From: Lepidodermella squamata
Lineage: Eukaryota; Animalia; Gastrotricha
Direction: 5' to 3'
DNA length: 64,000 bases
Assembly: GCA_047495785.1 (NCBI GenBank)
Contig: JBLDXI010000004.1
Location: forward strand, 2,542,001 to 2,606,000
This document shows positions 2,210 through 64,000 of the stretch, in pieces. Both the position numbers and the translations under genes were made by a program. Position 1 is the first letter of the stretch; each line of letters begins with the position of its first letter. Below the pieces are notes generated by a model. That model was given only the letters and a program-made list of their open reading frames with translations. It made no database searches and was not told where the DNA came from.

Positions 2210-5182
2210 ATGTTTTTTCTGCTCGCTTTTGTGAGCTCTCTCATAACCCCGGCGCAATTTGCCTGCCCGGCGCCTTCCTGCACAATAACACGTAAGATCA
2301 AAATAGCCAAGAGAAAAGGTATTAAAGTTATTTCTCTATTGTTCCTATCAGCGACTTGCCCTCCTGGTTACACTTACAATGCATGCTACGACAGTTGCTA
2401 CCTGTGGAGCACGTAAGTTTTTGTTCAAAGCGAAACACGTTTCAAGCAGCGTCGAAGATGGACCTTTCGCTGAGAGGGGGATAATGATTTTAGTTGAGGA
2501 ATCGTTGCAAATATCCGTATGAAAGAACACTGTCAACATCGAAGTCGATATCTATATCATATCACATAAGGTGGCTCGACTGTATCAAAAACAATTTGAG
2601 GCGTGTGGGAATCCAAAATTTAGTGGATGCGGAGGACCTAACGAAGGACAGAAATCGGTAGATGAATTTGATACTCATTCGCGTGGGATTTTGTATATTT
2701 GTCTCATTTATGGAAAATGATTTGGGTTTGACCAGGATCGATTACCTAGACTGCGGTCAATGTATCTAATTGCTGGAATAGCCTGCATGCTGATATGAAT
2801 GAATATAGTTACACGTTATATTCCTAGTCTGGGCTCAGTCTTTTGAAGGTTTTCGCATTTTGCATAATTTTTCCGACAAGCTTAATTTCCCACAGGAATA
2901 CTCTGTCTTATATGGCGGCTCTGCAGCAATGCATGGCAAACGGGGCTCATTTCTTTGTTCCAAACACTGAAGACGAATTCAAATATGTTGTGGGAATGGC
3001 TGATCGAACTGCCATGTACTGGTTCGGCCTGCAAGACTGGGCGTCACGCGGGGCTGGCAACAACGCCGGGCAATGGGTCTACGGCAACAACTACACAAAA
3101 GACCCAGATGGGAAGTGGTACTTCATGGACGAAACACCCACTTACATCACAACAGCGAATTTAGTAACCCAACCTAACTCGACCAGAATCGAGCCTGGTC
3201 CTTATAGCTGGTTACCTTGGGGTGCAAATGTCGCAACTGGCAATTTTCTCGCCGCATTAGCATACACTTCTTATTGGGGGTCTTACGCTTTTGTCAACTA
3301 TCAACTGACTATTAACTACATTTGCGAGGTCTCGAAAGTCTGCTCAACTTGCGCAGCTGGTTTCACGCGCTACCTATCCAATTGCTACTTGTATCGAAAT
3401 GACTCTTTAGACTACTACAGCGCGAGTGGGATATGCAGTGCGGCTAACTACGGAGCTGGTACGACCCTATGGACGCCCCGCCGCTGGCATTCGATCATTT
3501 TCGCGAGATTTCTAGCCGTGGCTGTTGGTTGGCCTCTAACAATAGGGCTAACTTCATTGGATCCGCCTTATTCCTGGAAATGGGCTGATAACGTAACTGT
3601 CTCGTTGTCTGATAATTTCGATATTCCGCCATTCACAATTCGATATGGCACGTATGTCGATACAGTGATTCGAATAGTGCCTGATACCAATTTAGCGAGT
3701 TTATCGGCTGTGTATGACGGTTTTTCGAATTTGACCTCGGGCTGGCGGGGCATTAATTCGGCAGAATTGCCGAACTGGACGAATCGATATGTTTGCCAAC
3801 AACCTGCTACATCAAGACTAGCGCAAACAACTCTAGCACCAACTACATCAACGGAATCAACAACAGTGACGACCACTACTTCTGCAAGCTCATCAACGGC
3901 ATCATCTACAGAGGGAATCACTACTACTGCAAGCTCATCGACAGCATCAACAACAGCGACGACCACTTCTACTGCGACTACTACGACAGCATCAACAGCA
4001 GCGACTACTTCAACTACGACAGCTGCGTCAGATTCTTCATCCACATGCACAACAACTTCTAAGAACACTGAAAGTTCTTCGACCACGTTATCAACCACTT
4101 CAAGCTCTTTGGCAACCGCAACTTCTTCGGTAACTACGCGGGCTACGTCGGACTCATCGTCCATGCCTACTACAACGGCTACAGCAATGACCAGTTCATA
4201 CAAGACTTTAGTGACTTCGCAGCTATCGACGACGGCTGCGAGTCGGGGCTATTGTGGCGATGCAATTTTGCAAGAGAGCCTCAACGAGGAGTGCGATGAT
4301 GGGAATACAGTATCGAACGATGGATGTGACCCTGATTGTAAATTCGAAGGTGAGGTATTTTAAGAATTCTTTTGAAAATTGGGAAATGAAAAATGGGACT
4401 CTAAAAATATGGGTGAAAAACCATATTCCTTGGGGCATTTGGCCTTGTATTATCAAGAATAAATTATTATCAAATTTAACTAAAGCACTTGAAGCAAAGC
4501 TGGATATCTATTTCACGATCGATTGCTCCCGCTCGCTCCACATGACGCACCTTCCAGCACTCAGTGGTCTTTTGAAGATTCTTACGAAACAAATTGTTCT
4601 CGTTGCCAGGTCAACGCAGGTTTGTATCATTGTCGTGTTAAAAAATTGTAGGCTATGATGCAATGACAGCTTGGAGTTATCGTTTTTGGTGGCCGCGTCT
4701 CGGGCATACGAGCTGTGACTCTTGCGAAAGGCAGCTCATTATTCGCAGACTCCATTTCAATTGATTCATTCTACAGTAAACTCCCCTACTTTGAAGGCCC
4801 TGGAAATGTCTCGAATGCGCTCAACAGACTTATGGATCCAGCAATTTTCAGTCCGGATGGTCGGTTGATTTTACTTCTCCATTTCAAACCAAATTGTAAT
4901 TTTGTTTCAGATGGATCACGATTAGATGCAACATCAGTTGCCGTAATTTTCACCACATCCCCGAGCTCTGACGTTTCAGCCTTAAAGAGTCAATTGAGTT
5001 ACCTAGCGTCGGCAAAGCGGCACGTAATTTTGGTTCAATTGAGAGAGAACTTGGAGCTCGATAAACAGGCAGCGAAATTCACTGCTCACGGGTTCTCCGT
5101 TATCAAAGTTAAAAATTGGAATCACTTGATGGCCTATGCTCCAGCCATACTGCATGAACTTCAAAATATTGCCCAAATGTGA
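2210..5182 (+). CDS. Gene A: secreted SP-CTLD-CTLD-mucin-MyxoCys-vWA protein; exons 2210-2291, 2352-2412, 2896-4349, 4486-4619, 4670-4859, 4911-5182
   Basis: GT-AG joins keep the frame. Hydrophobic signal peptide; CTLD motifs CPPGY..SCY..A.QQC..YWFGL..YICE and C..GF..NCY..IGL..WKWAD..YVCQ; S/T-rich stalk; [19 protein letters not shown]; vWA LDIYFTIDCSRS. Confidence 0.85.
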
Positions 5183-6221
5183 TAAGTGAAAATGAGTCTA
5201 CTAAAATGAGAGTCTCGGGTTCGAGTGAAGAAATTGATGACGAAAATGCTGTCCGAGATTTTTATTGAACATTCTCATTTTTTTAAAATTGCATTTTACA
5301 AGAGTTGAGGTTGGGAGGCAGCATCCTATGAAAAGGTTTTGTCGGCATTTTTTAGCAGGGAATTAGCTCAATAACCCGCCGTCAACAGGGAAATTCGACT
5401 TAGCGCCCGCAGAGGAGGTCTTATCCGCCAACTTATCCACGCGAAACTATGCTATGCCGAGATTTGGATAGCTTCTCTTGCGAAGAGCTAGTCAGCCCGG
5501 GAAACGGTGAAGTAAAAAATTGGAGGATATTTGTCGCCTAAAAAATCAAGATAATTTGTGCATTTGATATAGTACGTTAACCAGAAGTGGAATTGGGTTG
5601 TGTTGGGTTGGTTTCAGTGGACTTATTAGGATTCTGAAGGTAAGGAGCCAAGGCGATAAAACCAAAGGGTCCCACTGTGGCTTTTTCAGTCCTCATGTGG
5701 TTGACATCTCGAAGCTGGAGTATCCCATTGTAAAAAAATCGTAATTATCCGTAATACATTCGTGACCCTGATGATGACAGCTTTACTTGTATGATGACGC
5801 CTATAGGATGACGCATTACCAAGGCTTGCGAAGCCAGTACTCTCAGAAATCGATCGATCGATGCATTAATAGCTCAAAAACTCGTATCTACTGAGGAATG
5901 AGGAATCGAGGTGCTTTGGTTGATCTAGAAAGATTGAGTGATGACATCCGCGCCTAGATACTCGATATCATAAGCTGCTCTTCGAAATTATTTGAATTTA
6001 TAGTCTAAATGTCGCAGCTCCACACAGTCTCAGCGATCGCCGGGTTACGAACCCCGGTTTGAGGAGCCGTGCCAAATGGGCTAATGTCAAGAGCTTACCG
6101 AGGTGCTAATGGCGTCGCTTGACGCCAAACGTTCTAGAACTAGGAAAGCACTCTCCATTGTCACGGATTGTTTATTTATTAATGCTTTGTTTTCATTTTT
6201 GAAAGTATAGCCAATTTCGCC

Positions 6222-6297: not shown

Positions 6298-8456
6298 ATG
6301 ATGGTTATCCTCCTTATTTTTGTGAGCTCATTTTTGACTCTAGCAGAGTCTGCTTGTCGAGCATCTTCTCCCACAATGACGGCGCTAGCAATATCTTTGT
6401 TTACTACTTGGACTATAGTTACTTCGCAGAATACAACGGGACTACTAACATCAACGTTGGCTGGTGGCTATTGTGGAGATGGCATTGTGCAGGCCAATCT
6501 CAACGAGGAGTGTGATGATGGGAATACGGTACCGAATGATGGATGCGATTCGGCTTGTAAGTTTGAAGGTAAGGGCGAAACAATTCGTTCTCATTCACTG
6601 CTACTTTGTTTGCATTGAATAGCCTCATGTGGAAACTGCACTAGTCCAAACCAGCAATGCCTGCCGAACAACACGTGTACTTGCATGGCTCCTTCGCAGC
6701 AATCGTGCCAGCCGCCCAGCAACTGCAGCATTCTGGTGATTCGGCCTGTTTTTCAAATCGCAGGCTGTAACGCTCTTTGCCAGCAAAATGACTACGCATT
6801 TAGCTATCCCGAACCCGATCCGGAACTGAACCAAGACTTCCAGTGGAGGAGGATAAGCGGCCTGACAGGAAATTGTACTTCTTTCGAATCGGTCAGCAGG
6901 CCGAACTATGTCTTACGTCACTCCAACTTCAGGCTCTTTCTCACTTGGAACAATGGAGATCAGTGGCTCGCTCTTGATGCGACGTTCTGCGAAAGGCCTC
7001 GAGTATCTGGGGTTAGCTACGAGGCTGTAAACTTCCCTGGGTTTTTCATCCATGTCGATGCGAACAACGAAATTTACCTTCGTCAGAATGATTTTTCACC
7101 AGATTTCGCGTCTCGTTCAACTTTTTATGAAACAGCTGCTGGTAGGTTGATAGAGCGTTTTCATTTATATCTTGTTTGACCTCCTCAACTACAGAACGGG
7201 CCACAACCACTGCAAGCACCTCAACTTCAGTGACTACTACAAATTCGGTGACTACAACAGTTTCCTCGACTCTCACATCAACTACAACAGCGGAAACAAC
7301 GACTAGTTCTTCGATTACTGCAAGCTCGCCTACAACGGTGACTACGTCAAACACGGTAACTACGGAAGCTACGCCAGTTACTTCGACTACTTCCACTACA
7401 ACAACATCCGCAACAGCAAGCAGTACTTCGGATTTGACTACTTCCAAGAGTACAACGGAACAATCGACGACAACGATTGCCGTGAGCTATTGTGGAGATG
7501 GGATAGTGCAAGCAAATCTTAACGAGGAGTGTGATGATGGGAATACGGTATCGAATGATGGATGCGATTCGGCTTGCAAATTTGAAGGTAAGAGCCAGAT
7601 TCCCAGGAAGTCTAAATTGAATACCTTGTTGAAGAAAAACCCATGTTGTAAACCTGCAGCACATGCGAGCTGCACAGCTTCATAATACCCTGCCCAGTAT
7701 CTATGGAGTTACTAAAACGATTTTTTTCAATATTTTAGCACTGAATGCGAAGCTAGATATCTATTTTGCGATCGACTGTTCCCGTTCAATTCCCATGACG
7801 CACCTTCCAGCACTCAATAGCTTTTTAACAGTTCTTACGAAGCAAATTATTCTTTTTGCCGCATCGACACAGGTATGTGCCATGCCAATAAAAATGGGAC
7901 TTCGACCTTAAATCATGAACATATTTGAGCAGCTTGGAGTATTTCTGTTTGGTGGCCGTGTTGTCGGCGGACACATCCTCACTCTAGCAGATGGCAGCTT
8001 ACAGTTCAAAGACTCAGTTTCGATTGGTTCTTTATACAAAAAACTGACATACTTCGAAGGCCCGGGAAACGTCTCTAATGCGCTAAACAGACTTATGGAT
8101 CCGGCGTTTTTTAGTTCAAAAGGTCGGTTAATTCTGGGGAATTTGACAACTATATTTTCCTAACTTTATTTTCAGATGGATATCGGATTGATGCTGAAGC
8201 AGTTGCTGTGATTTTCACCGCAACCCCGAGCTCTGACCTTTCAGCCTTAGAGAGTCAATTAAGTTACCTGGCGTCGGCAAAGCGGCACGTAATTTTGGTT
8301 CAATTGCCGTCTGCCTACAAACATCAGAATTTAGAGCTCGATAAACAAGCAGCAAGAATTACTGCTCATGGCTTCTCAGTCATCAAAATTGAGAACTGGA
8401 AAAACTTGATGGCGTATGCTCCAGCGATATTACACGAACTTCAAACAATTACGTAA
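6298..8456 (+). CDS. Gene B: secreted SP-MyxoCys-Cys linker-AbfB/CBM42-like-mucin-MyxoCys-vWA; exons 6298-6568, 6623-7141, 7195-7587, 7739-7872, 7933-8122, 8176-8456
   Basis: Frame-preserving GT-AG joins. AbfB-like [26 protein letters not shown]...DATF...[15 protein letters not shown]; vWA DCSRS. Confidence 0.85.
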
Positions 8457-9002: not shown

Positions 9003-9185
9003 ATGATAGTTTTCCGCTTTATTTTTATGAACTCTCTGGTAGCACCAGCGGAATTTGCTTGCGCCTAGATTCTTCTTGTACAATAACGCGTAAGATTACA
9101 AAAATGAATAACTCAAAAGCTGTTTTACCATTCGTCACAAACAGCGACTTGCCCTCCCGGTTACACTTACAATGCTACAGCATGC
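9003..9185 (+). pseudogene. Relic of CTLD-type gene exons 1-2
   Basis: Homologous signal exon with in-frame TAG, conserved intron and truncated TCPPGYTYNA exon; preceded by CAGCGTGGGATATTG at 8923-8937. Confidence 0.75.
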
Positions 9186-10366
9186 TATCAAGTAGAGCCT
9201 AGATGCAATCATTTGCCTCCGATATTTTGCCGTAACTTCAAACTTAATCAAACTTAATTGGCAAGTTGTCGGCTTTCGTATCCACCGGTACTAGCTATTG
9301 AGCTGCAATTCACATCTGCAGTTGAGCTACTGCTATCTTATGGAGCCTCGGCCAAGTTCCCACTGTGGTCTGATATTACCTGCATTTCCCCTCTCGCCAA
9401 GGCCCATCGAAATTCGCCCAGCCTACTTCTGAGGTTCGCTAAGCAATAACGTGATTATAAAGATGACTCTTGCGAGAAAGCTGATACTATGAAAGCTTTG
9501 ACAAAGCAAAACAAGCGGTTACCTGCTATACCTGAATTTAGACTTCATTCCATTCGTTAGCGAGTGCAACGAGGAGGGGGCTGGGTCTCTAATCGAAGCT
9601 CTTGCTTATTATAGTGTCGAAACGTGGTTCACAGAATGCTGCGCACTATTATTATCGCTCTCATTCAGGTTGAGGTTAACGCACAATCATAATGGGTTGA
9701 TCGAATTATTCAAAGCGAAGAAATTAGCCTGCGACGTATTGCTATTTTGCATTTTCTTCGAGGCAACTCGAGGCAATTCAGAGAACGACAGCTCAGCCTC
9801 TATTCAAATATTGAATTGTCGTCAAAGCTATAGGTCGAATAGCTTTGACAATTCAATATTTTACGGTATGACATTCGTAAATGTATCTGAACTTGCCGTA
9901 CTGGATTTACTCACCGCAACTCGCCGATTCGTAAATCTCGGACGGCTCCGTACAGATATGAGCTCTTTACTCATGTTTTATCATATGAAAATACTTAGCC
10001 CTATTACCATGCGAGTGGAGCGAGCCAGCATGTAAGCCAGACTTTGTAGCCAAAAGGCTGAGTTGTCGCGATATTATTATAATTAATAAAAGGCTGAGAT
10101 GTCGCAAAATGAAATAATATTCGTCAAGTTGTCAGCAGTCGTAAAGGACTCAAATGTCTGTGGACCGGCAAACCAACAACAGTTCGGTCCTGAAATTAAA
10201 TCAGGCGGAATTTTGCAGGTAACAGCGCGCCGCTGGGATATCACCACTTCATAAGCGCGAGTATTTTGGTAGTTTTAACTTTTAACAAATGATGAGACAA
10301 CTTTTTTACTTTTATAATCTGAACAAATGTTGAGTCAATCCGACTAGATTTATGTTCGGCGGCAGG

Positions 10367-13266
10367 TTATTTTGAAATAGCCCGCTCGAGTGTTTCGATA
10401 GTAGTGCGCTTGTCATCGGCAGATACACTTGCATCGCAGTTCGCAGCCCAATGCAACGCTGTTTTATTACTGCGATCTACAGCTTCAATGTTAGCGCCGA
10501 ATTTTGTGAAGAGAATTTCAGCAACATCGTGATGGCCTTTATATGCGGCTGCCATCAACGGCGTAAATCCATATGTGTCGGCCATATTCACGTCGGCCTT
10601 GAAATCGCTAGCAAACATCCTCACCACGTCGACGTGGCCGTTTAAGGCGGCGGTCCAAAGTGGCGTACGGCCATCTTCCTTGGCCTTATTCACATCGGCT
10701 TTGAACTCGCTAGCTAACATCCTCACCACCTCGATGTGGCCGTTCTGGGCGGCGACGTACAGTGGCGTACATCCCTCCTTCTCGGCAATAGTCACGTCGG
10801 CCTTGAACTCGCTAGCTAACATCCTCACCACCTCGATGTGGCCCTCCTGGGCGGCGAGGTACAGCGGCGTAATTCCATCTTTCTCGGCCATATTCACATC
10901 GGCCTTGAACTCGCTAGCTAACATCCTCACCACCTCGATGTGGCCGTTCTGGGCGGCGACGTACAGTGGCGTAAATCCATCTTTCTGGGCCATATTCACG
11001 TCGGCTTTGAACTCGCTAGCTAACATCCTCACCACCTCGACGTGGCCGTTGAAGGCGGCGGCGTACAGTGGCGTACGTCCATCTTTCTCGGCCATATTCA
11101 CGTCGGCTTTGAACTCGCTAGCTAACATCCTCACCACGTCGACGTGGCCGTTTAAGGCGGCGGTCCAAAGTGGCGTACGGCCATCTTCCTTGGCCTTATT
11201 CACATCGGCTTTGAACTCGCTAGCTAACATCCTCACCACCTCGATGTGGCCGTTCTGGGCGGCGACGTACAGTGGCGTACATCCCTCCTTCTCGGCAATA
11301 GTCACGTCGGCCTTGAACTCGCTAGCCAACATCCTCACCACCTCGATGTGGCCCTCCTGGGCGGCGAGGTACAGCGGCGTAATTCCATCTTTCTCGGCCA
11401 TATTCACATCGGCCTTGAACTCGCTAGCTAACATCCTCACCACCTCGATGTGGCCGTTCTGGGCGGCGACGTACAGTGGCGTAAATCCATCTTTCTGGGC
11501 CATATTCACGTCGGCTTTGAACTCGCTAGCTAACATCCTCACCACTTCGACATGTCCGTTGAAGGCGGCGGTCAACAGTGGCGTAAATCCATCTTTCTGG
11601 GCCATATTCACGTCGGCTTTGAACTCGCTAGCTAACATCCTCACCACTTCGACATGTCCGTTGAAGGCGGCGGTCAACAGTGGCGTCGCACTGTTTTTGC
11701 TGCAAACTTCAATGCTTGCCTCAAATTGCTCGGCAAGTATCTTCACAATGTCGATGTAGCCTTTGTTAGCAGCAAGGTTCAATAGAGGAAATCCCTCTCC
11801 GTCTTTGCAGTCTGGGCTAAGACCGAGGTCACTGTTCGACAGTAGCTGCACCAATTTCAACACGTCTTTCCGCAGACATACGCAGTCGAATAGCTCCTGA
11901 AAAAATATGTACATATCCATCGCCTGAATCAAGCGTAATAAATGCGGAGATACCTTAACAGCCTCTTGCTTGGGTTCGACGACTGATAGATCTGGCTGAA
12001 GAATATAAAGAGCAAAGTTTCAAGCAATGATCCATATGCCATGGAAGCTATTCAAACCTTTGTATACCGCATCGGTGCTGATTTTAGCAGATAACTACTG
12101 GCTTGAAGCTGATTCGAGGTCGGTCGATCCTCAGGAATCAATGCGAGCATTGACATTACAAAATCGCGAAACTCATCGGTATAGCCGCGGGATTCGTCAA
12201 ATGGTTTCAGGTTATTGCTAAATTATTATTGAGCTTAGCTTGAAATTTCGAATTTCAGCTCGAAAGTTTACCTCAATATACCAGCCATCGAGTTGATCTG
12301 TAAATTTATTTTGAGCTTAGTAAGTAATTACTCAAGATCATTCTCATACTGGTTCTTTGAAGTTTGCTAATTTGAAGAGCGCAAATCCTAACGACCAAAC
12401 ATCACTTGCAACTGATTTCGGTTTACGCTCTGATACTACAGGATTTATTACCTCAGGAGGGGAAGCGGACCACTTTGCTAGAGCAAACATTTTCGAACCG
12501 CTGTATAGAATAGCAAATTTAATACCGAGTGGATGCTCCTTTTCAATCTTACGTGTCGAATTTCTCGATGATTCCCAGGTCACCTAGTTTTGCCGTTCCG
12601 CGGTCTTCTGTTAGCAGTACATTGCTTGCAGTTATATTACGATGAACGATACTCCGGCCGTGAAGATAAACCAAAGCTGATACGAGTTGGCGCGACCATA
12701 TTTGAAGCATGATTTCCGGGATAGGTCTAGTCTCTGCCGCGATCAGGCTTTCGAAACTTCCACCCTTGCAATACTCCATCACCAGATACCTCATGCGAGA
12801 ACCTTGGTATTCCTCTTTATACAGACAATTATGGCTATGTTTGATCAAGCAATTGAGCTTCATACCTTCGAACACGCCGAGAACCTTGGCTATGTTTGCA
12901 TGGCTGATATCGACCATTAGCAAATCCTGTAATTTGAAAATATGCCTACTACATGAATTCTGGGATTTATTAGGTAATCCCCCAGGGTAATCCCATCTTT
13001 TTCCTGAAGCAACCTTTTTTCACTCACTATTGTTTAGGATCGGGATTCGAAAACTCAGAGCATTTGAAACTCACTCTTTCACGAAGAAGTTCGCCGATTC
13101 CGGTGAAGTCTTTTTCAAGGTCCGTCAAGTTGGTTTCTTTCATTACAACGCGTTCTGCAGGGCTCCCATTACGTTCGCACAACATTGATGTTCGTAAGCG
13201 GGCATGACGCCAGGGTTTACCGATGACAGTGAACTGCGACATTGATTGATACGTTCTTGAATCCAT
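10367..13266 (-). CDS. NEK-like protein pseudokinase fused to 14 ankyrin repeats (about 8 exons)
   Basis: Spliced minus-strand frame: MDSRTY..VVMKETNL..ELLRER|DLLMVDISHANI..YLVMEYCKGG..HRNITASNVLL..KLGDLG..SPPE..SDVWSLG..KEP|INSMAGILS|NNLKPFDESRGYTDEFRDFVMSMLALIPEDRPT..YTK|PDLSVVEPKQEAVK|ELFDC.., running in frame into the ankyrin ORF. Confidence 0.8.
10560..11690 (-). repeat. 102-bp tandem ankyrin-coding repeat with a higher-order duplication at 510-bp offset
   Basis: 34-aa units ADVNMAxKDGxTPLxxAAxxGHxEVVRMLASEFK; a four-unit block recurs almost identically 510 bp away. Confidence 0.9.
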
Positions 13267-14381: not shown

Positions 14382-14754
14382 CATTCGCCAACCGTTTTAG
14401 GTTACCAGGTCTCTAATCTTGACTTTAATCAGTCAGAACCCATTTGAGCGAGCTCGCAAAAGTTCATGAGGCAAGGCAAAGTTGAATCAAGAGGAACTTA
14501 AGCATAAAAGCCCGAAATTGCATAACAGCTTCACTTCTGGACCTAAAAGGGACCTAAAATCTAATACTAACTCAATTTTGTGTCTTAAGATCTCCAAGTC
14601 CAACAATAGAGCAGCCTGCAGAAACATGTCCCAAAAAATAAACTTGTCAGGATTGCAATTGAGTGAATGGCTAAATTTTAAGTTTTTATTCGAATACATA
14701 TATATGTACGAACATACTTAATTTAAATGCTGACTTACTATTTGTCACAAACAG

Positions 14755-15190
14755 CGACTTGCCCTCTCGGTTACACTTACAATGCATGCTACGACAGCTG
14801 CTACATGTTAAGTTCGGCTCACAAATTAAAGCATAAAATGCTATTAGGCAGTCCTCCGATATTATCAGTCCAGGAAATGTTTCGAATGCGCTCAAGAGAC
14901 ACATGGATCCGACGGTATTCAGCTCAACAGGCCGGTTAATTTCTGCTGAATTTTCAAAATTCTTAACTTCATTTTAAGATGGATCACGGATTGATGCAAT
15001 ATCTATCGCCGTAATTATCACAGCTTCCCCGAGTTCTGACGTTTCAGCCTCTAGAAGAACAGTTAAGCTACCTAGCGTTGTCACGCCGTCGTGTAATTCG
15101 GTTTCAATTGCAATCTGGCTTCAAAAATCGACATTCGGAACTCCACAAACAAGCAGCAAGATTTTTACTGCGCATGGCTTCTCTGTCATC
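14755..15190 (+). pseudogene. Collapsed cluster relic (CTLD exon 2 joined to vWA fragments)
   Basis: TCPLGYTYNACYDSCYM followed by degenerate, frameshifted vWA sequence (GNVSNAL..., [24 protein letters not shown]). Confidence 0.75.
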
Positions 15191-15443
15191 CAAATGCTCG
15201 TTTTACCTCAGAGCTGGACCTTGTCGGATCCCCGGAAATTTGTCTAAATTGCCCTAAATAAAGACTAAATTTAGGGCTCAGCTCAGAAGCCCTTCCAAAC
15301 GTTCTAATTTCAAAGAGCTTACAGTGTCGACGAATAAATATCATCAATGGGTCTAGAATCTGCAAAGCACTTAGATTCCTCATTAGACATGCATTTTTCA
15401 GTTATTTATGCGACAAGCGATTTGTAAGTGTACTGGTTTTGCC

Positions 15444-45458: not shown

Positions 45459-45892
45459 TAGAAACAGTGCTTCGGATTTGATTTGATTTAGACCTTATTC
45501 TAGCTTATGTATATTAATGACGATTGATTTGCGAGAGGCTGCCTTTTAATTTTATTAATTTAATTTATGTTGATTCACCGTGAGGGATGCAATCAAAAAA
45601 CTTGAGATCTTTCCGCCTGTTTTCCATAAGAATTCGCTTTGAAGAGGGGCCTCTAGTTTCAAATTCGCGTCATGATTCAAATGTTAATAAATTATCAAAA
45701 ATGAAAAATCAAATGATCCACTGTGTGACAACTTGAAATTCCAATCCAATGGACTCCCGGATGGAACGTTCAGTCGTGAACTTACGATGAAACTTACGGA
45801 ACAAATTATACTTGCTTCCACGTCGGCTCAGAACACATTGTAGTTTTGTCGCTGAAATTGCTGAAATTGCTTGATAATTTCGCATTTCGCAG

Positions 45893-48900: not shown

Positions 48901-49341
48901 TAGAATACGGAAAATGTCGCGTCGATTTTCTACCAGACTATTCAAATATTCAACAGTGGAAAAACACGTCAGACGCTGTGGCTGCTGTAGTTCGGGAAAT
49001 GTTACATGTGGCTTGAATACGTTTAGCGGAATTAAAATATGAATTGAATCTTGAAGATTCGATAATCCCGTGTTCCCACATTTTCGTTACCCATCTTGAC
49101 TTGACTTCAGTTTGTGATGATGAAAATTGGAGACGGATGGAGAGAAAGAATGACAGAAGACTTTCCGAGACTGAAGGTTTGACCAGAAATAATTGAGTCG
49201 TTTACGAAGATTGAATTGCTCCTACATATCAAGATAATCCCGTTTCCTATATTATGTATCTTGCCGCTTATCGCGTGTTCCTTATCAGCTATAAGTCCCT
49301 GTTTATTACTTGATAGCATTAAGGCATTACGCACTTTCAAA

Positions 49342-50457
49342 ATGAGCAGCAATTTTAACTATGCGAAATTTGCCCAAGCCTGCGAAGATGACGACCTTGC
49401 CGTATTCTCGTCAGACCTCGACGACGCTGTTTCAGCACTTGGTGCCGATAAAATCGCTCGGGTAGTCAGTGCAACAGCAAGCCACAAATGCCTCAGTTAC
49501 CTGTTATCAACGCGAGACGTTAATTTGGAAACAAAGGGTTCTTACCCAAAGTTACGGCTTCTCACATCCGATCATACCTGCTTAACAGCAGCTTGCGATC
49601 CAGCTATAGGAAAGCTTGAAGTCAACACTGTTTCACCGTTTACTACTGAACAACATCGAGACAGCGACCGTGTTGAAGATCGTTTAAAAACAGTTGGCAT
49701 ATTGCTAGACCACGGTGCTAACATTGATTACGTCGATCCTTATCGATACACAGCTTTGAAATTGAGTTTGGAATATCGACTGAGGCCTTTGGTTGAATTG
49801 TTGGCAACCCGCGGGGCAAATTTGAACATCCCAAGTGGCGAATCACCCCCCTTGAATACTGCCTACTTCAATAATTGCTGGGACATTGCGAAATTTCTCA
49901 TAGAATCTGGGGCTAATCTAGAGAGCACCCATCATCCTGAGGATAAAGTTCGTGTATGGAGGTCGTGCATGGTTGATTTGTTTCTTCGCGCGGCAGATTT
50001 CGCTGTTCCAAACGGCGTCAAATTGTTTGTTTTCCCTGGAGGGGTAAAGGCTGATTTTTTCAAAACCCTGGCTAAGGCTGGTATGATGTGCAAATGCTGC
50101 GCTAAGGGCGATTATTTCACCAGCATCATATTGTCAAGATTTGCCTATGAAAGGATCAATAATCTGAGCCAACTGGACGATCACTTGTTTGAAATTCTTC
50201 TCTTCGCAAGAATGACATCGACATTCAACCCGGAGAATTACAAGCCGCGAACCGGCGATGGCGTTGATAGCCCTAAAATACGAAAAATTGTGATGCCTCA
50301 TTTAGCGCAACTTTTCCCCATGAAGCTACAGGCCATGTGCAGGATGGTGATCCTCAACCGACTGCCAACTGGTTTCAAGAAAAGAATAGATGCTATAGAT
50401 AACGGACTGGACAACGTTTTACCGCCAGTATTGCTTCGCTTTTTGAAATTTGAGTGA
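49342..50457 (+). CDS. Ankyrin repeat and SOCS box (ASB-like) protein, intronless
   Basis: Ankyrin motifs LLDHGANIDYVD, LATRGANLN, FLIESGANLE; C-terminal SOCS box PMKLQAMCRMVI...LPPVLLRFL. Confidence 0.8.
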   Translation: MSSNFNYAKFAQACEDDDLAVFSSDLDDAVSALGADKIARVVSATASHKCLSYLLSTRDVNLETKGSYPKLRLLTSDHTCLTAACDPAIGKLEVNTVSPFTTEQHRDSDRVEDRLKTVGILLDHGANIDYVDPYRYTALKLSLEYRLRPLVELLATRGANLNIPSGESPPLNTAYFNNCWDIAKFLIESGANLESTHHPEDKVRVWRSCMVDLFLRAADFAVPNGVKLFVFPGGVKADFFKTLAKAGMMCKCCAKGDYFTSIILSRFAYERINNLSQLDDHLFEILLFARMTSTFNPENYKPRTGDGVDSPKIRKIVMPHLAQLFPMKLQAMCRMVILNRLPTGFKKRIDAIDNGLDNVLPPVLLRFLKFE

Positions 50458-50688
50458 TTCTGAATACTGAATTTTTCTTTGAGAAGGTTAACAGCAAAAA
50501 TATCTGGATCAATAAAGTACCTCTCTAATAGATTGTGAGTGTGTGTAATCCGATAACACAAACGCGATAACGGCGATAACAACGTGATACTGATAAGACA
50601 CTGTGAATAAGACGTTGCGGTATAAAAGCAGGCGAAATAACACCTCAAAACACATCCAAGCATCCTTCACACATAAAAAGCTAAATCC

Positions 50689-51933
50689 ATGAAGATTCTA
50701 GCACTTCAACTCGGTATAAAATCGATCAAACTTGTTCCGGACGACGCCTCAGTCAAGCCCAGCTACCAAGCCAATGATGTAATCACTGGCTCGTGTCACT
50801 ACGTCATCAGTAGCGATCGCGACCTTCTCAACACGCAGAACGAGGAGGAACCTATTGTACTCGAAATCACGCTTCGAGGGCTGTCCAAGGTTCACTGGAT
50901 TGATACTAAAACTTCGAGTGCTATCGGTGGAAAATCATCGGCAGTCACTTACTCGTCGACTCGGAGTCTCCTTTACATGGTCCAGAGGACCACTCTCAAG
51001 GACGAACAACTCACCCCGGGAAAGCACCGCGTACCTTTCCGCTTCGAACTTCCAGAAGAACCGTAAGTTGAGCAAAAAATTAACCTCATCCTTTAGTGTT
51101 TGTATGTAATTCATAGGTTAAGCACCTCATTCGAAGGTACCCACGGCTTCGTTCGATACTCAATCACGGCCCAGCCTAAAGTTTCATGGCTTGGTGGTTT
51201 CTTTGCTGTAAAATCGACTTTACCGTTGAAGGTCGTTCAGCCCCCACTAAGCGATTACTCGGTCAAAGTCGGAGGTTCCAACTCGAAGTCTGTCGGCCCT
51301 CTGTTTGCTAAATCCGGTCCATTCGCTATTGGGGCTGAGTGCGATAGAGCCGCGTATGACCCCCAGGGGGATGTTGCTATTCTCAAGGTTGAATTAAGGA
51401 ATATGCCCTCTCGAATGGCCGCCGAACCCAGCTTAAAACTCGTTCAAACCTGTGTTTTTACGGCCGATTGCGGAAAAACTCGGACGACTTCGGAATACTT
51501 CGATTTACAGCCAATGAATGAGCACGACAAGAAAGGCAATACTGCACCGCCGGATTTGTCCCAAGGAGGTTCATCAAACTGGAATCGGATGGCCTTCAAA
51601 TTACCGGAAGTTACTCCCTCGATTTCGAGTGGGAATATTTCAGCGACCTATCACCTCGAGGTAGCTGTGTCGATTCTGTTGGCTCTTAACCTCCGCGTCA
51701 ATTTGCCGATTTCGATGGAAACAATGCCGTGCAAGCGGGAACCTGAAAAGATGGCTGATAAGGCTGGCAAGGTGGATTCCATTGTTGAGAACAATACGTA
51801 TTACGATGACGAAGCGCCACCTAGCTATTTTGCGACATTTTACGATGGGCAAGTTGCAATCGTTCCGCACAATTTCGATCGGCAGCAGGGGACAAATGGC
51901 GAGAAATATGAAAAAGACACTGGAAAAAGCTAA
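50689..51933 (+). CDS. Alpha-arrestin (arrestin-domain protein); exons 50689-51062, 51117-51933
   Basis: Y..NDVITG, GLSKVHW, LTPGKHRVPFRFELP, STSFEGTHGFVRY, C-terminal PPSY (PPxY). Confidence 0.88.
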
Positions 51934-52809: not shown

Positions 52810-54068
52810 TTATTTAGCTTTGGCTTTGACTCCATTCTTCTTGCCATTTTTACCCTGCGACTCTTCGAAGTTTTCTGGAAGAACTGCAACTTGTTGATTC
52901 AAGAATGTCGCAAAATAGCTCGGTGGCGCTTCGTCATCGTAGGCGCTTTTCTCAATGAGCGAATCCTTCTCGCCTGCCTTATCAGCAATTTTTCGAGGCT
53001 TCGCCTCAGCCTTCTTTTTACACGGCACTGTTCCCATCAAAATTGGCAAATTGACGCGTAGGTTCAGGGCCCAAGGGATTGACATTGCTACCTCAAAGTG
53101 ATAAGCCACCGAAATGTTTCCACTAGCAATCGAGGGAGATACCGTCGGTAGTTTGAATGCCATCTGATTCCAGTTAGACGAAGCCCCCTTCACCAACTGC
53201 GATGCAGTGATACTCTCCATGTCATGCTGGTTCAGCGGCTGCAAATCTAAGCTCTTCGTTGTTGTTTGAGTTTTCCCACAATCGGCAGTAAAAATGCAGG
53301 TTTGCACGAGTTTCACGTAAGGTTTGACCGTTCGAGAGGACATGTTGCTGAATTCAGCCGTGAGATGGGCGACATCTCCCAGGCAATAATACGCAGCCCG
53401 ATCGCACTCGGCCTCGACAGTTAGCGGGCCAGATTTGAGAAACAGGCAGCAGACAGACTTGGAATTCGTACCAGCGACTGGTTTCAACTGGGACGGGTTG
53501 CTGATAAACAAGCGTTGAACGACCTTCAAAGGCAGGGTCGATTTAGGAACGAAGAACGATCCAAACCATGAGGCCTTAGGTTGGGCTGTGATCGAATATC
53601 GAACATAGCCATGGGCTCCTTCAAATGACGTGCTTAGCCTGCGAATTGAGAGTCGTAATCAAAATCTGTGGCTTTGTTTTTTCGATTAACCTACCCTTTA
53701 TCCGGAAGTTTGAACTGGAAGGTTATGCTGTGTCGCCCCGGGGTGAGTTGTTCGTCCTTGAGAGTGGTCCTGCTAACCAGATTAACCAAAGTTCGAGACG
53801 ATGAGTAAGATACTGTGTAAGTCGTTGTTGTGGTCGATTTTCCAGTGCTAATAGTCATAGTACGAGTTTCGGTCCAATGAACGTTAGACAGGCCTTGCAG
53901 CTTGATTTCAAGTACGATCGGCTCCTGTTCGTTTTGCGTGTTGCAGTTGAATATGCCCCGCTCGGCATTGATGACGTAGTTGCACGAGCCAGTGATCACA
54001 TCATTGGATTGGTAGATCGGCTTGACCGAGGCTTTGTCAAGAACAAGTTGAATCGATTTTAGGCCCAT
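52810..54068 (-). CDS. Alpha-arrestin paralogue; exons 54068-53695, 53638-52810
   Basis: Same motifs and intron position as the + strand copy; PPSY retained. Confidence 0.88.
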
Positions 54069-55819
54069 ACGTATATTATAGTGATTTTCGACTTTAGGAA
54101 AGGATTTTGTTTGTTTGTTCGGGTAGATGATGCATCGCGGTGTGGTGGCGGCTGCTTTTATACGGCAGCCCCTTATTCACAACTTTTTATCAGCCGGCAA
54201 CGAGCGGCGTTGTGAATCATGCCCTTTTTCAACCGAGATAGCGATGAATTATCGCCATTATCGGTCTTGTGTTATCACTTACCTCACCTTCCTCAGCAAT
54301 CACGAGATTGATAACGATTTATGAGAAGCTTTCGTTATTTATAGGTTAAAGAAGCTATTTTTACCGCTTGAGCATCTCGCAGAAGCTGTTAAAATCGCCA
54401 ATTTGTGAGTGAACAACTCGGCATAAGGGCTTGGAAAAAGTGTGTGAAGTACGGGAGTACTGGTCCGGTTTAAAACCGAAGATTACGAAAATATTGGGTT
54501 TATCTGGGACCAGAATTATTTATTCATACCTGTTCATAATAAATTTCGGGACAAAATGGTTTCGCAAATCTTTGCCTTGTTTGTTTGAGTTCAGAATTCA
54601 ATTCGAAATTTAAGAATCGAGGATGTCATGTCGCTGAAGCTTTGAATATTCTAGTCAATAGGCCGCGTGAAATGAAGCGAATGAACAGGCTTGTTCAAAA
54701 AATGAACAAGGCCGCCTGAGTCTACATGCGTCAATTACTTCAATCATTATTCACTGATGACGATTGTTTTTGGCTGAGTTTCCTATCTTCCTGTCATGTG
54801 AATTACATCTTATTGACGTCATACTCTTCGATTTCTTTGTTTCAGCTGTCTCTTCACCCTGTTTTCCCGCAGACATATTTTTTACGCCGTTTCACACGTA
54901 TTTAATAGGGCATTTCTTGCCTGGAATCTTCATTCCTTTCAATCGCTCAGTTATCTCACTTGATAATATTTGATAATTTTTCTCTGTTCCTTATTAATCT
55001 CAATTCCTCATTTTTGGTTAACCAAAGACAACTATGAAGACTCGGTCGGTGATGTAGCCCTTGTATTAAAAGGGGTTGCGACTAAGCATCATATTATCTC
55101 AATATTTCTCTTTTTAGTATCTTTCTTCTCCGTCTTTCTGCGGCGCTAGTGCCGTTGATCAATAGTTAATAATCATGTGATAAAGCGGAGCGAAGGATTC
55201 AAGCCTCGAGGAAGTGAGCTGCTGTCCAAGCAGATTCCCTGAGCACGCGGTTCTCTCTTCCCCATTCACCGGCAAACAAAGAGATGGATACTAGATACAA
55301 AAGCCTGGGGACCTTGGATCGACCTTTTAGGCCTCACTTGGGTAGATGTAGTACTTTATGTGTAAATGCGCCCATATAGGACTGCGATGACCTCTGGGCT
55401 TTACTCGGTCAAATGAAACACCTCCATTCTAGCCAGCAACACTGGGTCGCTGGGTTCCTTGAGCTGAGAAAACTGAGAAAAGACCAGGGGCAGAGTCAGG
55501 TATTTCATCATATCATTATATCTTCAAATTATCATACATCTTTATGATTAATTTGTTTATCATTATATATTTTATTATTATTATTATTATTTGTTATATT
55601 GACTCGTTTTGATTATGGGTGACTGGTTTGCAGCTGGTTTGTTTGGGTGGTTCGCTTGGCTTGACGCTTTGTTCTGTTCGTAGGATTGCTCCGTTGTTCC
55701 GAGTCGAGTTCGGGTTTCGGGATTGGTCCTCATCACAAAATAAATTAAGCACGAGGGGAGGCTCAAGTTTACTCAATAAGATTTTTCCGAGACTGCAGGT
55801 GATGGGTGAGTTTCTCAGA

Positions 55820-60218: not shown

Positions 60219-63200
60219 ATGATGATTTTTCTTCTAATATGCGTGAACTATCTTATAACACAAGCATACGCTGCTTGCCGGGGATCTTCATGCACAACAG
60301 CGGCGATGGCAATAGTAGCGATAACCACTTGGACTATAGCGACTTCGCAGAACACAACAGTGCTATCGACCACAACGATTGCTGTAACTAGTGGCTACTG
60401 CGGAGATGGCATAGTACAGGCCAATCTCAACGAGGAATGTGATGATGGAAACATGGTATCGAACGATGGATGCAATTCGGCTTGCAAGTTGGAAGGTGAG
60501 GGCTAGTTTTCAAGTAGGTAACGCTACTTTCAAAATTGAAGAAAAACCGTTAACAATTGAAAAATGGCGTTGGGCAAAGTTTTACGCATGGTGAGATTTT
60601 AGAAGTGAACGAGACATCGATAGAAGCAAACGAAAAGGTCATCGAAAAGACGCGGTAAAAATTTTATAAAATCAAGGAGGAGGAGGATGGGAGCTTCTTA
60701 GGTGTATTCTGCTCTATATCAGCTAAAAAGGTCCTGTTTGTCGGCCCATTCCTAGTCACAGCGCTGCAGAAATAGGGATCTGCAGAGGGATTTCTTGTAC
60801 AGGTAATCGCTAGCCATGGAGAAATACAATTTTCCCCGATCTAGAACTCTGAGAGAGTTTGGCGTAAAAAATCCTACTATTCTTTATACTGTGTTTGTAT
60901 TTCAAAGTCTCCTGTGCCAACTGCACTAGTCCGAACCAGAAATGCCTGCCGAACAACACATGTACGTGCGTTGCTCCGTCGCAGCAAACATGCCAGCCGC
61001 CAAGCAATTGCAGCATTCTGGTGATTCGGCCTGTTTTTCAAATCCCAGGCTGCAACGCTCTTTGCCAGCAAAATGACTACGCATTTAGCTATCCCGAGCC
61101 AAATCCTGAACTGAACCAAGACTTCCAGTGGAGGAAGATAAGCGGCCTGACTGGCAATTGTACTTCATTTGAATCCATCAGCAGGCCGAACTATGTCCTA
61201 CGTCACTCCTACTTCAGGCTCTTTCTGACCTGGAACAATGGCGACCCGTGGCTCGCTTTGGATGCGACGTTTTGCAGAAGGTCACTAGTATCCGGGGTTA
61301 GATACGAGGCTGTAAACTTCCCTGGGTTTTTCATCCATGTCGATTCGAACAACGACATTTTCCTTCGTCAGGATGACTCTTCAGCGGATTTCGCGACGCG
61401 TTCAACTTTTTATGAAACATCGTTGGGTAGGTTGCGATTTTACAGCATTTCACGGTTTGATTGTTTTCTTCCACGACAGCAACGCCTATAACTACCACTA
61501 GCTCCTCGACAACAGTGAGTACTTCAACGACTGTTACCACGACACATTCACCGTCTATCCCACCATCAACTACGACTGTTACCACGACAGGTACGAGAAG
61601 TACTGTCTTTCGATAAAACAGTGGCTGACTTGTGCGCTAAACGCCAAGATGAAATGTTCACCAATATTTGGGCCGCGCGCTGATGTCAAAGAGCTGTTTT
61701 AAACTGTGCAAGGGTTTTTTTATACCAAATTCGTAAGATCAGCTTTCCCATTTCCCCTTCCGCTATGATAATTTCCGTCTTATGTCTTTTCCACTGGAAG
61801 CAAACTTGCCTAAGAACCCGCCACTTCACGCAACCATTCATTTTAGCTCCAAGATTTTGCGTACAAAACGTCACTGTGGATGGCGCGTTGTTAACCTAAT
61901 TCCCAGGTAATAAATATCTCCGATAAAGCTTTTTCACAGGATGATGCCATCCAACTTAAAATCCTGTGAAATGCCGTTTTTTTCAAAAATGACAATTTTT
62001 TATCAGAAGTCGCGGATTTGGTTCATCATCAATTTTTTCTCTCGAATCCCATTCAGGTGAATATTTGAGGAGAGTTTATCCCAGACTAGATCTATTGACT
62101 GATTGCATTGAATAATTCCTCATGGTTATGAAGTTGTTTGAAAAAGCGAGGCGAAAAAGCTTGCGCAAAATTTTTGAAACCCTATGTTACAAAAAATGTA
62201 ATGGATCGCAAGGAATAATGTTTCTCATAGCATAGTAACGATCGATTGACCAATCGGCTTGCGCAACAGAAGTGGACAGAGGGTTTCTATGCTGATGAGC
62301 TAAATTGTCGTCATTAACGATTAACGCTTTTTCGCATCAACCCTCAACGTTGTTTACTATATTACTCATACTCATTGCTAGTAATTTTCAGTGAAAGAAT
62401 ATCTTGACTTGAGCGCGTGTTCCACATTCTTCCAAAACAGAAACGCCTACAACTAATGCAAGTTCATCGACAACAGTGAGTACTTCAACGACTATAACTA
62501 CGACACATTCACCGTCTATGCCGACATCAACTACGACTGCAATAGCAACAATAAGTGCTTCGACTATTGTGGCCTCGCAGGAGTCGTCAACAACAACGAT
62601 TGGTTCTACAGAGGCTACGCCAGATTTTTCAAACACTCTCATATCAAATTCAACAACAGTGGCAGCAATAAGTAGTTCGACTTCGACTATAGTGAGTTCG
62701 CTGAGTACAGCATCGCTATCGACCACGACAATTGCTGTGAACTACTGTGGAGATGGCATAGTGCAGGCCGATCTCAACGAGGAGTGTGACGATGCGAATA
62801 CGCTATCGAATGATGGGTGCGATTCGGCTTGCAGGTTTGAAGGTAGAGATTTTGAGCATCTCCTTGAACTGAAGAAAAACGCACGGAACTGCGCTTGATA
62901 AAAGGTTTACTTTATTATTGTTCGATAACATTACCCATTCCAAATTTCCAAAAAGAGGGTTCAGAATCGTACAATGTCCTATCTCCAATAAGGTGGTTCA
63001 ATTTTCGCAGCCATCCCTATGACGTCAATATTAAGAAATAAGAAGGTTTTAAGGATATTAATCTGTTTGAATTTGTTCAGCACTGAACGCCAAGATGGAT
63101 ATCTATTTTGCGATCGACAGTTCTCGTTCGATTCCTATGACGCACATCCCAACACTGAATGGCCTTTTAAAAGTTCTTACGAAACAAATTATTCAAATTG

Positions 63201-64000
63201 CGCCATCAACACAGGTATGTGCCGTGCCTGTAAAAAATACTCACTGTGAACATGAAATTTGAGCAGCTTGGAGTACTCATGTTTGGCGGTCGTGTTGCTG
63301 GCAGACGCATCCTATCCTTAGCAGAAAGCAACATACAATTCACAGAGTCGATTTCGATTAGTTCTTTCTACGACAAACTAGCATACTTCAAAGGCCCAGG
63401 AAATGTCTCTAATGCGCTCAATAGGCTCAGAGACCCGGCGATTTTCAGCCCGGAAGGTCGGTTAATACCTTCCAAATTTCAAAAACAAAAACCATCAACT
63501 ATTTTTTCAGATGGATCACGGGTTGATGCAATAAAAGTTGTTGTCATTATAACCGCATCCCCAAGCTCTGACCTTTCAGCAGTGGAAGAACAATCATTGT
63601 GGAACCGCTGGTAAGTTGAACTTCGGCGCGCACGCTGATTGGTCAATTTATCGTTGCTAGTGACTCCGGAATGAAACAATTTAGTCGTGCGATCCACTAA
63701 TAAATTATTTTCTATTTATGCAAAAAATGACCTTGCCACACCCTCTGCACGGTTTCCATTGACCACGAGCGTAAACTCCATATTAATGGTGGTAAATTGC
63801 TGCGGCAAAAAACACTTGTTGAAAAAGATCTTATGGATCGCACGACCAACATGTTTCATCCGGGAGTCATAGCAACGATCGATTGACCAATCAGCGTGCG
63901 CATTGGATTGGACTTTTAAGTGGTCACACAATGATTGAGTTACGTAGCGTTGTCGAACCGGCGCATAATTTTGGTTCAATTACAGTCTAGCGACAAACAT
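60219..64000 (+). CDS. Gene H: SP-MyxoCys-AbfB-mucin-mucin-MyxoCys-vWA, last exon disrupted by a transposon and running off the window; exons 60219-60495, 60908-61426, 61480-61590, 62441-62842, 63081-63214, 63267-63456, 63511-
   Basis: Same architecture as genes B and E. EEQ|[10 protein letters not shown] is split by a 339-bp insertion, giving a TAA at 63612-63614. Confidence 0.7.
61872..62393. mobile_element. Probable CACTA/CMC-like element remnant in an intron of gene H
   Basis: CACTG...CAGTG ends; shares ATGGATCGCA and AACGATCGATTGACCAATC with the 63595 insertion. No TSD seen. Confidence 0.4.
63595..63933. mobile_element. CACTA/CMC-like MITE inserted in a vWA exon
   Basis: Ends CATTGTGGAACCGCT / AGTGGTCACACAATG; 2-bp TSD AT. 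Removing it restores CAA TTG AGT TAC (QLSY), as in the paralogues. Confidence 0.8.

Follow-up and report, generated by a model that had tools for sequence, protein, structure and literature searches.

What does a genome encode when one secreted chassis recurs, gene after gene, under different putative binding heads? This question is raised by a locus of the gastrotrich Lepidodermella squamata, contained in a stretch of 64,000 nucleotides (the window) that corresponds to positions 2542001-2606000 of contig JBLDXI010000004.1 (C4) in an assembly of 121 Mb and 151 contigs. The locus is a tandem array of nine paralogous genes, one (Z) upstream of the window and then A to H, and seven of them (Z and A-F) are intact. 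In each of these genes a head made of C-type-lectin-like domains (CTLDs), AbfB domains or both is followed by a Ser/Thr-rich stalk, a Cys-rich DUF4215 module and a three-exon VWA tail. We favour, with somewhat more confidence than doubt, the reading that the head binds a ligand, the stalk projects it and the VWA tail tethers or multimerises the molecule, giving anchored recognition or agglutination of glycan-bearing particles.

The genome is that of an animal, intron-bearing, with a modal intron of about 50 bp and about one gene per 4 kb. Searches with a CTLD exon, an AbfB exon and an exon of a neighbouring arrestin gene, the last of which gave a single match of 36% identity, did not retrieve the animal's own proteins; the genome is accordingly unannotated in the databases used, and its lineage is poorly sampled. 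An earlier note on this DNA had described eight co-oriented genes that share a signal exon, a stalk, a Cys module and a three-exon VWA tail but differ in head: two CTLDs in A, F and G, one AbfB domain in B, E and H, both kinds in C, and two AbfB domains in D. A tblastn search with one copy of each module as query recovers all eight on the plus strand with these heads, and the shared parts are seen in the spliced models, in homologous N-termini and in a DUF4215 match in every gene. The models were built from splice sites conserved across the paralogues; GT..AG is found at each junction, and A-F run uninterrupted from ATG to stop. Coordinates here and below are those of the window, position 1 of which is position 2542001 of C4, unless a contig is named.

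C4:2535069-2539143, about 3 kb upstream of the window: gene Z, two CTLDs, AbfB, stalk, DUF4215 and VWA; intact spliced open reading frame of 930 aa
2210-5182, plus strand: gene A, 730 aa, signal, two CTLDs, stalk, DUF4215 and VWA (tblastn, splice sites, intact open reading frame); exons 2210-2291, 2352-2412, 2896-4349, 4486-4619, 4670-4859, 4911-5182
6298-8456, plus strand: gene B, 595 aa, signal, short linker, DUF4215, AbfB, stalk, DUF4215 and VWA; exons 6298-6568, 6623-7141, 7195-7587, 7739-7872, 7933-8122, 8176-8456
15531-20319, plus strand: gene C, 936 aa, signal, two CTLDs, short stalk, AbfB, stalk, DUF4215 and VWA; exons 15531-15615, 15667-15727, 16344-17410, 17883-18398, 18452-18925, 19585-19718, 19787-19979, 20039-20319
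21390-26230, plus strand: gene D, 870 aa, signal, DUF4215, AbfB, stalk, AbfB, stalk, DUF4215 and VWA; exons 21390-21645, 22116-22634, 22694-22960, 24341-24865, 24944-25387, 25527-25657, 25709-25898, 25950-26230
27280-29615, plus strand: gene E, 655 aa, signal, DUF4215, AbfB, stalk, DUF4215 and VWA; exons 27280-27547, 27710-28231, 28279-28851, 28904-29037, 29092-29281, 29335-29615
36125-39045, plus strand: gene F, 696 aa, signal, two CTLDs, stalk, DUF4215 and VWA; exons 36125-36209, 36263-36323, 36754-38093, 38335-38468, 38523-38712, 38765-39045
39880-42613, plus strand: gene G, architecture as in A and F, with an in-frame TGA; exons 39880-39961, 40017-40077, 40241-41805, 41906-42039, 42093-42282, 42333-42613
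60219-64132 (the window stops at 64000), plus strand: gene H, signal, DUF4215, AbfB, stalk, DUF4215 and VWA; exons 60219-60495, 60908-61426, 62441-62842, 63081-63214, 63267-63456, 63511-63593 and, beyond a transposable element, 63935-64132
63594-63934, no strand assigned: miniature inverted-repeat transposable element (MITE), an insert of 341 bp; the element proper is 339 bp long, ends in inverted repeats and is bordered by duplicated AT

The count of eight genes in the window thus stands, A-F being intact, but the last two are broken. Gene G has its TGA at 41112-41114 (codon 339, within CTLD2), where the paralogues C and F carry Trp, and is a probable pseudogene or null allele. In gene H the MITE splits the last VWA exon, so that the product stops at aa 541, and an intact frame of 600 aa appears if the insert is removed. 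At least 40 full-length copies of this element, 93-100% identical, lie elsewhere in the genome on many contigs, and one of them is identical, so that the insertion into H is very recent and the element appears to be currently or very recently mobile. The proposed span of 2210-64000 is likewise occupied by the family, but the cluster begins before the window with the ninth gene, Z, and five unrelated genes are located inside it. Gene D has a second in-frame ATG upstream, at 21378, and a polyA-like hexamer is found within 60 nt of the stop in seven of the nine genes. Within the long introns of gene C, 15800-16300 and 17588-17666 are covered at 30-300 times the depth of their flanks in DNA runs and represent dispersed repeats.

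The donor phases of the introns make the modules compatible with one another. They read 1,2,1,0,1 in the CTLD-only genes, 1,1,1,0,1 in the single-AbfB genes, 1,2,1,1,1,0,1 in C (and similarly in Z) and 1,1,1,1,1,0,1 in D, where the additional exons are of class 1-1. The whole CTLD unit, the AbfB exon and the exon for stalk and Cys module are therefore each phase 1-1 cassettes, and the intron ahead of the VWA tail is of phase 1, which is what had been claimed for the introns that bound these modules. The proposed order of head and chassis is borne out as well, with two amendments: stalk and Cys module are encoded by a single exon, and the AbfB-type genes add an N-terminal DUF4215. Splice sites are conserved among the paralogues, and purifying selection acts on every module, the median ratio of nonsynonymous to synonymous divergence (dN/dS) being 0.17 for the CTLDs, 0.25 for AbfB, 0.22 for VWA and 0.17 for the Cys module at a pairwise synonymous divergence (dS) of 0.34-1.27 between paralogues. 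The age of the paralogues, the constraint on each module, the conserved splice sites and the polyA-like hexamers together give strong, if indirect, support to these being real genes.

It might be argued that the composite genes (two CTLDs and AbfB in C and Z, two AbfB domains in D) are artefacts of modelling, their upstream units being separate truncated genes or dead exons and single-head proteins the only products. The exon joins of the composites are indeed read from DNA, the two runs that contain this sequence being DNA contigs in which the introns are covered and spliced joints are absent. If the donor that follows the CTLD exon in C and Z were read through, a stop would be reached after 8-11 codons, which makes a CTLD-only product conceivable, and skipping of any cassette would be frame-neutral since all are of class 1-1. 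However, tblastn finds no signal exon ahead of the AbfB halves of C and Z, so that the AbfB half of C needs the CTLD exons for its secretion. C, Z and D all retain the phase-1 donor past the short stalk, and both heads of C and Z show dN/dS of 0.1-0.2 although the two genes have diverged to a dS of 0.44-0.68. Because the AbfB half has no signal of its own and both heads are under purifying selection, the fused CTLD and AbfB models of C and Z are favoured, and we regard the artefact explanation as very unlikely.

The N-termini are hydrophobic, signal-like and homologous between both gene types (consensus M-IFLL-FVSSLIT-A--AC-ASSCTIT). As the earlier note had claimed, neither a transmembrane segment nor a glycosylphosphatidylinositol (GPI) tail is seen: a hydrophobicity scan gave no segment of transmembrane level beyond the signal, except for a buried stretch in CTLD2, and the C-termini are polar. 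These features suggest that the proteins are secreted. The stalks, of 80-185 aa, consist of Ser and Thr to 52-68% and of Pro to only 1-7%; they are mucin-like (Ser/Thr-rich, of low complexity and variable in length) and probably O-glycosylated. The Cys module matches DUF4215 (PF13948) above the Pfam cut-off of 27 bits in every gene, the C-terminal modules scoring 27.6-41 bits. In the AbfB-type genes B, D, E and H exon 1 comprises the signal, a short Thr-rich linker and an extra DUF4215 (34.6-41 bits), so that the AbfB head lies between two Cys modules. Genome-wide, 12 of 14 DUF4215 matches (E≤1e-5) fall in the cluster on C4, the other two lying on contigs C66 and C11, and in this animal the module serves, in effect, as a marker of the family.

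The AbfB head is encoded by the following exons.

6623-7141, plus strand: AbfB cassette (example), a CBM42-like beta-trefoil that is preceded by about 60 aa of Cys-rich lead; Pfam PF05270, E 1e-18
17883-18398, plus strand: AbfB cassette, further copy
22116-22634, plus strand: AbfB cassette, further copy
24341-24865, plus strand: AbfB cassette, further copy
27710-28231, plus strand: AbfB cassette, further copy
60908-61426, plus strand: AbfB cassette, further copy

Scores against PF05270 are 64-68 bits (cut-off 22.8), and all cluster copies, that of Z included, exceed the cut-off in a genome scan. A profile of seven copies matches two structures in the PDB, 3KMV (E 2.5e-12) and 1WD3 (E 7e-12). 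In the arabinofuranosidase AtAbf43C, arabinose is contacted by H70, Y73 and D89 in the beta pocket and by H118, N120, Y121 and D136 in the gamma pocket (PMC12493170). According to a HMMER alignment, the LRH-xx-[FY] and DATF motifs of the family fall on the beta-pocket positions of CBM42; His is kept in six of the seven copies, D1 having Gln instead; at the aromatic position five copies have Phe and two have Tyr, and the Asp of DATF is present in all seven. In the alpha pocket, Pro replaces His, and in the gamma pocket, as read from the alignment, Tyr and Asp are lost. The sequences thus suggest that one of three pockets, beta, is usable, the other two being degenerate.

The domain is not uniformly conserved around this pocket. 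Within the domain, dN peaks (0.43) in the 20-codon window that separates the His from the Asp of the beta pocket, where dN/dS is about 1. The other windows mostly give a dN/dS of 0.1-0.2, and values of 0.3-0.6 are confined to the flanks of the pocket loop and to the region near the C-terminus. Most of the loop divergence separates a group of B, C, H and Z from D1, D2 and E. The nearest sequences come from animals and bacteria alike, all at about 40% identity, and the best representative of the AbfB exon among 1.84 billion sequences is 41% identical. AbfB domains have been annotated in a few animals and are not known to have a function there. At least 49 AbfB matches exist in this genome. It should be added that contig C66 (139142-240778) contains more than 30 of them, about 20 being spaced regularly at about 1010 bp, which constitutes a long tandem AbfB array.

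For the CTLD head, Pfam Lectin_C (PF00059) stays below its cut-off of 22.6 bits in C (21.8), F (18.1) and G (21.0), and A gives no match. A profile of five paralogues finds CLEC6A and Mincle in the PDB at E 7e-5 to 3e-4, covering only the alpha1-beta2 half of CTLD1. The WFGL motif and the cysteines C1 and C4 are present, and a protein atlas built on a language model places the region at 0.94 to Lectin_C clusters. Of 1348 candidate proteins, none matched the CTLD region at E≤1e-3. These CTLDs appear to be divergent, and sugar binding should not be assumed for them.

This divergence suggests another reading, namely that the CTLD pair, and perhaps AbfB, binds proteins or other non-sugar ligands, which would make the genes an extracellular protein-binding or scaffold family. 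Many CTLDs that lack the sugar-binding motifs bind proteins or other non-sugar ligands. The CTLDs here lack the Ca2+/carbohydrate motif and the C2-C3 disulfide, their Lectin_C scores are under the cut-off, and two of the AbfB pockets, alpha and gamma, are degenerate, all of which would fit. Against this, the invariant Asp of DATF and the conserved beta-pocket His are hard to explain without a sugar ligand, AbfB occurs in several other lectin-like secreted or receptor families of the same genome, and distant relatives of the VWA tail carry heads resembling legume lectins. We consider heads that do not act as lectins distinctly unlikely. The earlier description of the heads as sugar-binding is thus supported only in part: AbfB keeps the triad of the beta pocket, but its other two pockets are degenerate, and the CTLDs are without Ca2+/sugar motifs. 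Similarly, the heads are diversified in type and in one AbfB pocket loop (dN/dS about 1), but overall they are as conserved as the tail.

The VWA tail is exemplified by that of gene D.

25527-26230, plus strand: VWA tail of gene D (example), three exons whose introns are in frame and stop-free, so that it can be folded as a read-through

Pfam VWA (PF00092) matches only the first tail exon, at 19.9 bits (E 1e-3; cut-off 23.8), and exons 2 and 3 have no Pfam match. The Pfam matches expected by the earlier note were therefore obtained for AbfB (E 1e-18) and DUF4215, both above cut-off, but Lectin_C and VWA remained sub-threshold. The read-through of gene D, together with an alignment (A4) of overlapping read-throughs, was folded with AlphaFold2 (AF2), giving a predicted TM-score (pTM) of 0.64, a predicted local distance difference test (pLDDT) of 58, best in the last exon, and the order beta1-alpha1-beta2-beta3...beta6-alpha6. 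Nearly all of the top 50 Foldseek matches to this model are VWA domains, the rest being chains of the TFIIH complex (best E 3.7e-6, probability 1.0); they include the A3 and A1 domains of von Willebrand factor (vWF), collagen VI, TRAP, PTMP1 and integrin I domains. The atlas places the tail at 0.94 to VWA clusters. A phmmer search of the PDB with the read-through gave no match at E≤10, and the A4 profile found only integrin I domains there, at E of about 0.7-1, which were used solely for the local alignment of beta4. In the metal ion-dependent adhesion site (MIDAS), DxSxS is kept (DCSRS; DSSRS in H), and TASP stands where integrin alpha2 has TDGES; the position of the GxT Thr reads GPGN, this point having been aligned by eye. 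The modelled fold of the tail is that of a VWA domain, and its metal site is incomplete.

How the heads were distributed over the array can be approached from trees of the separate modules. The VWA tree pairs Z and C (96/97) as well as D and E (92/96) and splits the AbfB-bearing genes from A, F and G (82/91), whereas the AbfB tree groups C with B (92/95) and the CTLD tree Z with G (87/91). In approximately unbiased (AU) tests, the grouping Z+C is rejected by the AbfB data (p 0.012) as well as by the CTLD data (p 0.032), and the VWA data reject B+C (p 0.008) and Z+G (p 0.044). Since the module trees conflict, the paralogues have exchanged cassettes. On the simplest reading, one CTLD unit joined a gene of AbfB type, from which C and Z descend; D arose by one internal duplication of the cassette of AbfB and stalk; and there were tandem duplications, with later gene conversion or crossover shifting cassettes among paralogues. 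The word "combinatorial", as applied to this cluster, means a few shuffling events plus homologous exchange, without free reassortment.

These observations can be assembled into the anchored-recognition reading introduced above. The cleavable signal would lead to secretion of the stalked proteins; the family itself has grown by tandem duplication and phase 1-1 cassette shuffling, with later exchange between paralogues. The head would bind its ligand, and in AbfB the beta pocket would most likely accommodate a non-self glycan, of furanoside type or another; the loop of this pocket has diverged between gene subgroups. The glycosylated stalk would project the head, and the VWA tail would probably use metal-independent protein contacts to fix the molecule in mucus, cuticle or matrix or to assemble it into multimers. 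Anchored in this way in matrix or mucus, the proteins would recognise or agglutinate glycan-bearing particles (microbes, food or substrate).

Several points weigh against this proposal. Only one AbfB pocket of three looks usable, and its Tyr is Phe in five of seven copies. In the alignment, neither CTLD of any paralogue has EPN/QPD, WND or the C2-C3 cysteines; the second half of the CTLDs matches no solved CTLD in the profile search of the PDB; and AF2 on the CTLD pair with five sequences gave an unusable model (pLDDT 27.7). Confidence in the VWA model is moderate (pLDDT 58), and its read-through includes two intron-encoded inserts. Support for the exon joins comes from conserved splice sites, open frames and selection, the runs with this DNA being DNA contigs, and the groups put to the AU tests were picked after the trees had been seen. 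Finally, two of the nine genes (G and H) are broken, so that the family is not uniformly maintained.

The most serious competitor holds that these are structural components of glue or mucus, in which heads and VWA domains would cross-link the animal's own glycoproteins into a gel or a temporary adhesive, as proposed for the lectin- and VWA-rich adhesives of echinoderms, flatworms, slugs and Hydra. C-type lectin and VWA domains, as well as an AbfB-domain product of Hydra basal-disc cells, have been reported among the secretions of adhesive glands (PMC9589958, PMC7037938). The Ser/Thr-rich stalk, a VWA tail nearest to collagen-binding and matrix VWAs, the multivalent heads and the fact that the heads are conserved overall rather than hypervariable would agree with such a role. 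In known adhesives, however, these domains are mostly found on separate proteins or are otherwise combined, and the strong difference in the AbfB pocket loop between paralogue groups fits varied ligands better than one self-glycan. We hold the structural role to be rather unlikely, and prefer anchored recognition.

Comparison with known systems places the family more precisely. None of the 162 proteins from the AbfB search carries DUF4215, VWA or CTLD parts, and a search seeded with the Cys module yielded nothing but DUF4215 repeat proteins of bacterial type that carry PA14 or LTD. Among the proteins of the databases, described or predicted, none with this chassis was found. As had been suggested, this is a lineage-specific tandem family of secreted modular proteins with interchangeable heads, and the search of protein databases brought up no homologous architecture. 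The statement that the domain combination is unlike any described family requires some qualification: the chassis is absent from the databases searched, but secreted CTLD and VWA proteins are known in Caenorhabditis elegans, where clec-60/61/62 are clustered and infection-induced (PMC2895663, PMC8051790). Like our family, CLEC-60/61/62 combine a signal, one or more CTLDs and a VWA domain in one protein (domain content being compared here), form tandem clusters, are lineage-expanded and are presumed to act where host and microbes meet (PMC2895663, PMC8051790). Going by the cited texts, they have no AbfB, DUF4215 or Ser/Thr stalk, and the CTLD search among 1348 candidates detected no homology, so that the resemblance is one of design only. 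As a functional analogy, they may nevertheless lend support to anchored recognition. Searches of the present genome for the nematode TTR-52 family, nematode SL1 RNA and tunicate-type GH6 gave no match; these negatives are weak, as the control genomes were silent as well.

The single modules have counterparts of their own. The AbfB head is a trefoil homologous to the CBM42 of GH54 and GH43 arabinofuranosidases (1WD3, 3KMV, 9NXH), and its beta-pocket residues align with H70/Y73/D89 of AtAbf43C; unlike those enzymes, it is a stand-alone head, with no glycoside hydrolase, degenerate alpha and gamma pockets and a Cys-rich lead of about 60 aa. The nearest AbfB sequences, 37-41% identical, belong to uncharacterised multi-AbfB proteins of Clytia hemisphaerica and Clavelina lepadiformis, with others on metagenome contigs, but the Clytia and Clavelina proteins are arrays of 3-7 AbfB domains, sometimes with CAP. 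The tail resembles the VWAs of vWF A1/A3, collagen VI and matrilins (TM-score 0.5-0.66, E 4e-6 to 1e-4) and shares with vWF A1/A3 an incomplete metal site, but its sequence stays under the cut-off of Pfam, and it forms a lone terminal domain spread over three short exons instead of belonging to a multi-VWA matrix protein. The Cys module, above cut-off, is 56-67% identical to the repeats of bacterial DUF4215/TIGR02232 proteins; these, however, have 4-7 tandem repeats with PA14/LTD, whereas one module (two in AbfB genes) forms the joint between stalk and VWA here.

A genome search with the last VWA exon found only this cluster and two distant copies on contig C7 (45% and 38% identical). The loci of relatives of the tail on C7 are as follows.

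L004:5869-7812, L004:8861-9481 and L003:5654-8073 (contig C7): distant relatives of the VWA tail, 38-45% identity in the last exon

The split of the VWA domain into three exons is apparently kept in these copies, as seen from exon-sized matches at similar spacing, and the relatives have Thr-rich stalks and no DUF4215. The heads of two of them have no Pfam match, and a repeated L004 head domain, taken from a neighbouring gene, lies at 0.92 to legume-type (L-type) lectins in the atlas, which is a lead only. It is possible, although clearly less likely than not, that the cluster is one arm of a genome-wide system of lectin head, stalk and VWA tail, a germline-encoded combinatorial glycan-recognition repertoire in mucus or matrix. 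At least three unrelated lectin folds, namely the CTLD and the CBM42 beta-trefoil of this cluster and the legume-lectin-like heads on C7, would then have been placed on one three-exon VWA tail by means of 1-1 cassettes, and the pocket loop diversified by paralogues. A stalk-VWA gene on contig C7 likewise has a Cys-loop channel ahead of it. A recent segmental duplication behind the pairs of Cys-loop channel and VWA gene on C4 and C7 was considered and dropped, as the channels are only 28% identical.

The remainder of the window consists of remnants of the family and of unrelated genes. At least five relics, together with birth-and-death turnover, had been proposed, which agrees with the five relic loci and one pseudo-exon that were found.

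9006-9191, plus strand: weak relic resembling the signal exon and CTLD start, 34% identity
14751-15241, plus strand: relic, a CTLD exon-2 remnant (86% identity) adjoining frameshifted remnants of VWA exons 2/3
35153-35215, plus strand: relic, a 20-aa piece of the last VWA exon
45700-46385, plus strand: relic, the 3' half of a member (VWA exons 1-3, 37-63% identity), directly 3' of the Cys-loop channel gene
47551-48973, plus strand: relic, divergent and frameshifted, a CTLD2-like segment in three frames with a VWA tail, 33-46% identity
61480-61589, plus strand: pseudo-exon, a duplicated start of the stalk exon of H, out of phase if included
10370-13019, minus strand: ankyrin-kinase gene inside the cluster, unrelated; a regular array of 12 ankyrin repeats (Pfam Ank E 4e-111), then a protein kinase
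44223-45455, plus strand: Cys-loop receptor gene, unrelated to the family; ligand-binding domain and TM1-3
49183-50454, plus strand: ankyrin and SOCS box (ANK-SOCS) gene, unrelated to the family
50677-51930, plus strand, and 52813-54176, minus strand: arrestin-domain genes (Arrestin_N/C), convergent and mutual paralogues

The relic at 14751-15241 is a family member with an internal deletion, and in that at 47551-48973 neither CTLD1 nor stalk nor Cys module was found by tblastn and Pfam. Two open frames of the Cys-loop gene are separated by an in-frame stop at 44736-44738, which may mark an intron.

Overall, the shuffling of phase 1-1 extracellular modules and modular secreted lectins with VWA domains are well known. 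Since the kinds of module and 1-1 shuffling were known before, the gain is incremental rather than conceptual. If expressed as modelled, the cluster would nevertheless be a clean example of exon shuffling, with 1-1 cassettes, tandem duplication and exchange between paralogues in one 70-kb locus. It would also represent the use by an animal of a microbial-type CBM42 as a lectin head, beside C-type-lectin-like heads on the same scaffold. In addition, the family provides matched constructs, with the same chassis and different heads, with which the ligands of animal AbfB domains may be probed.

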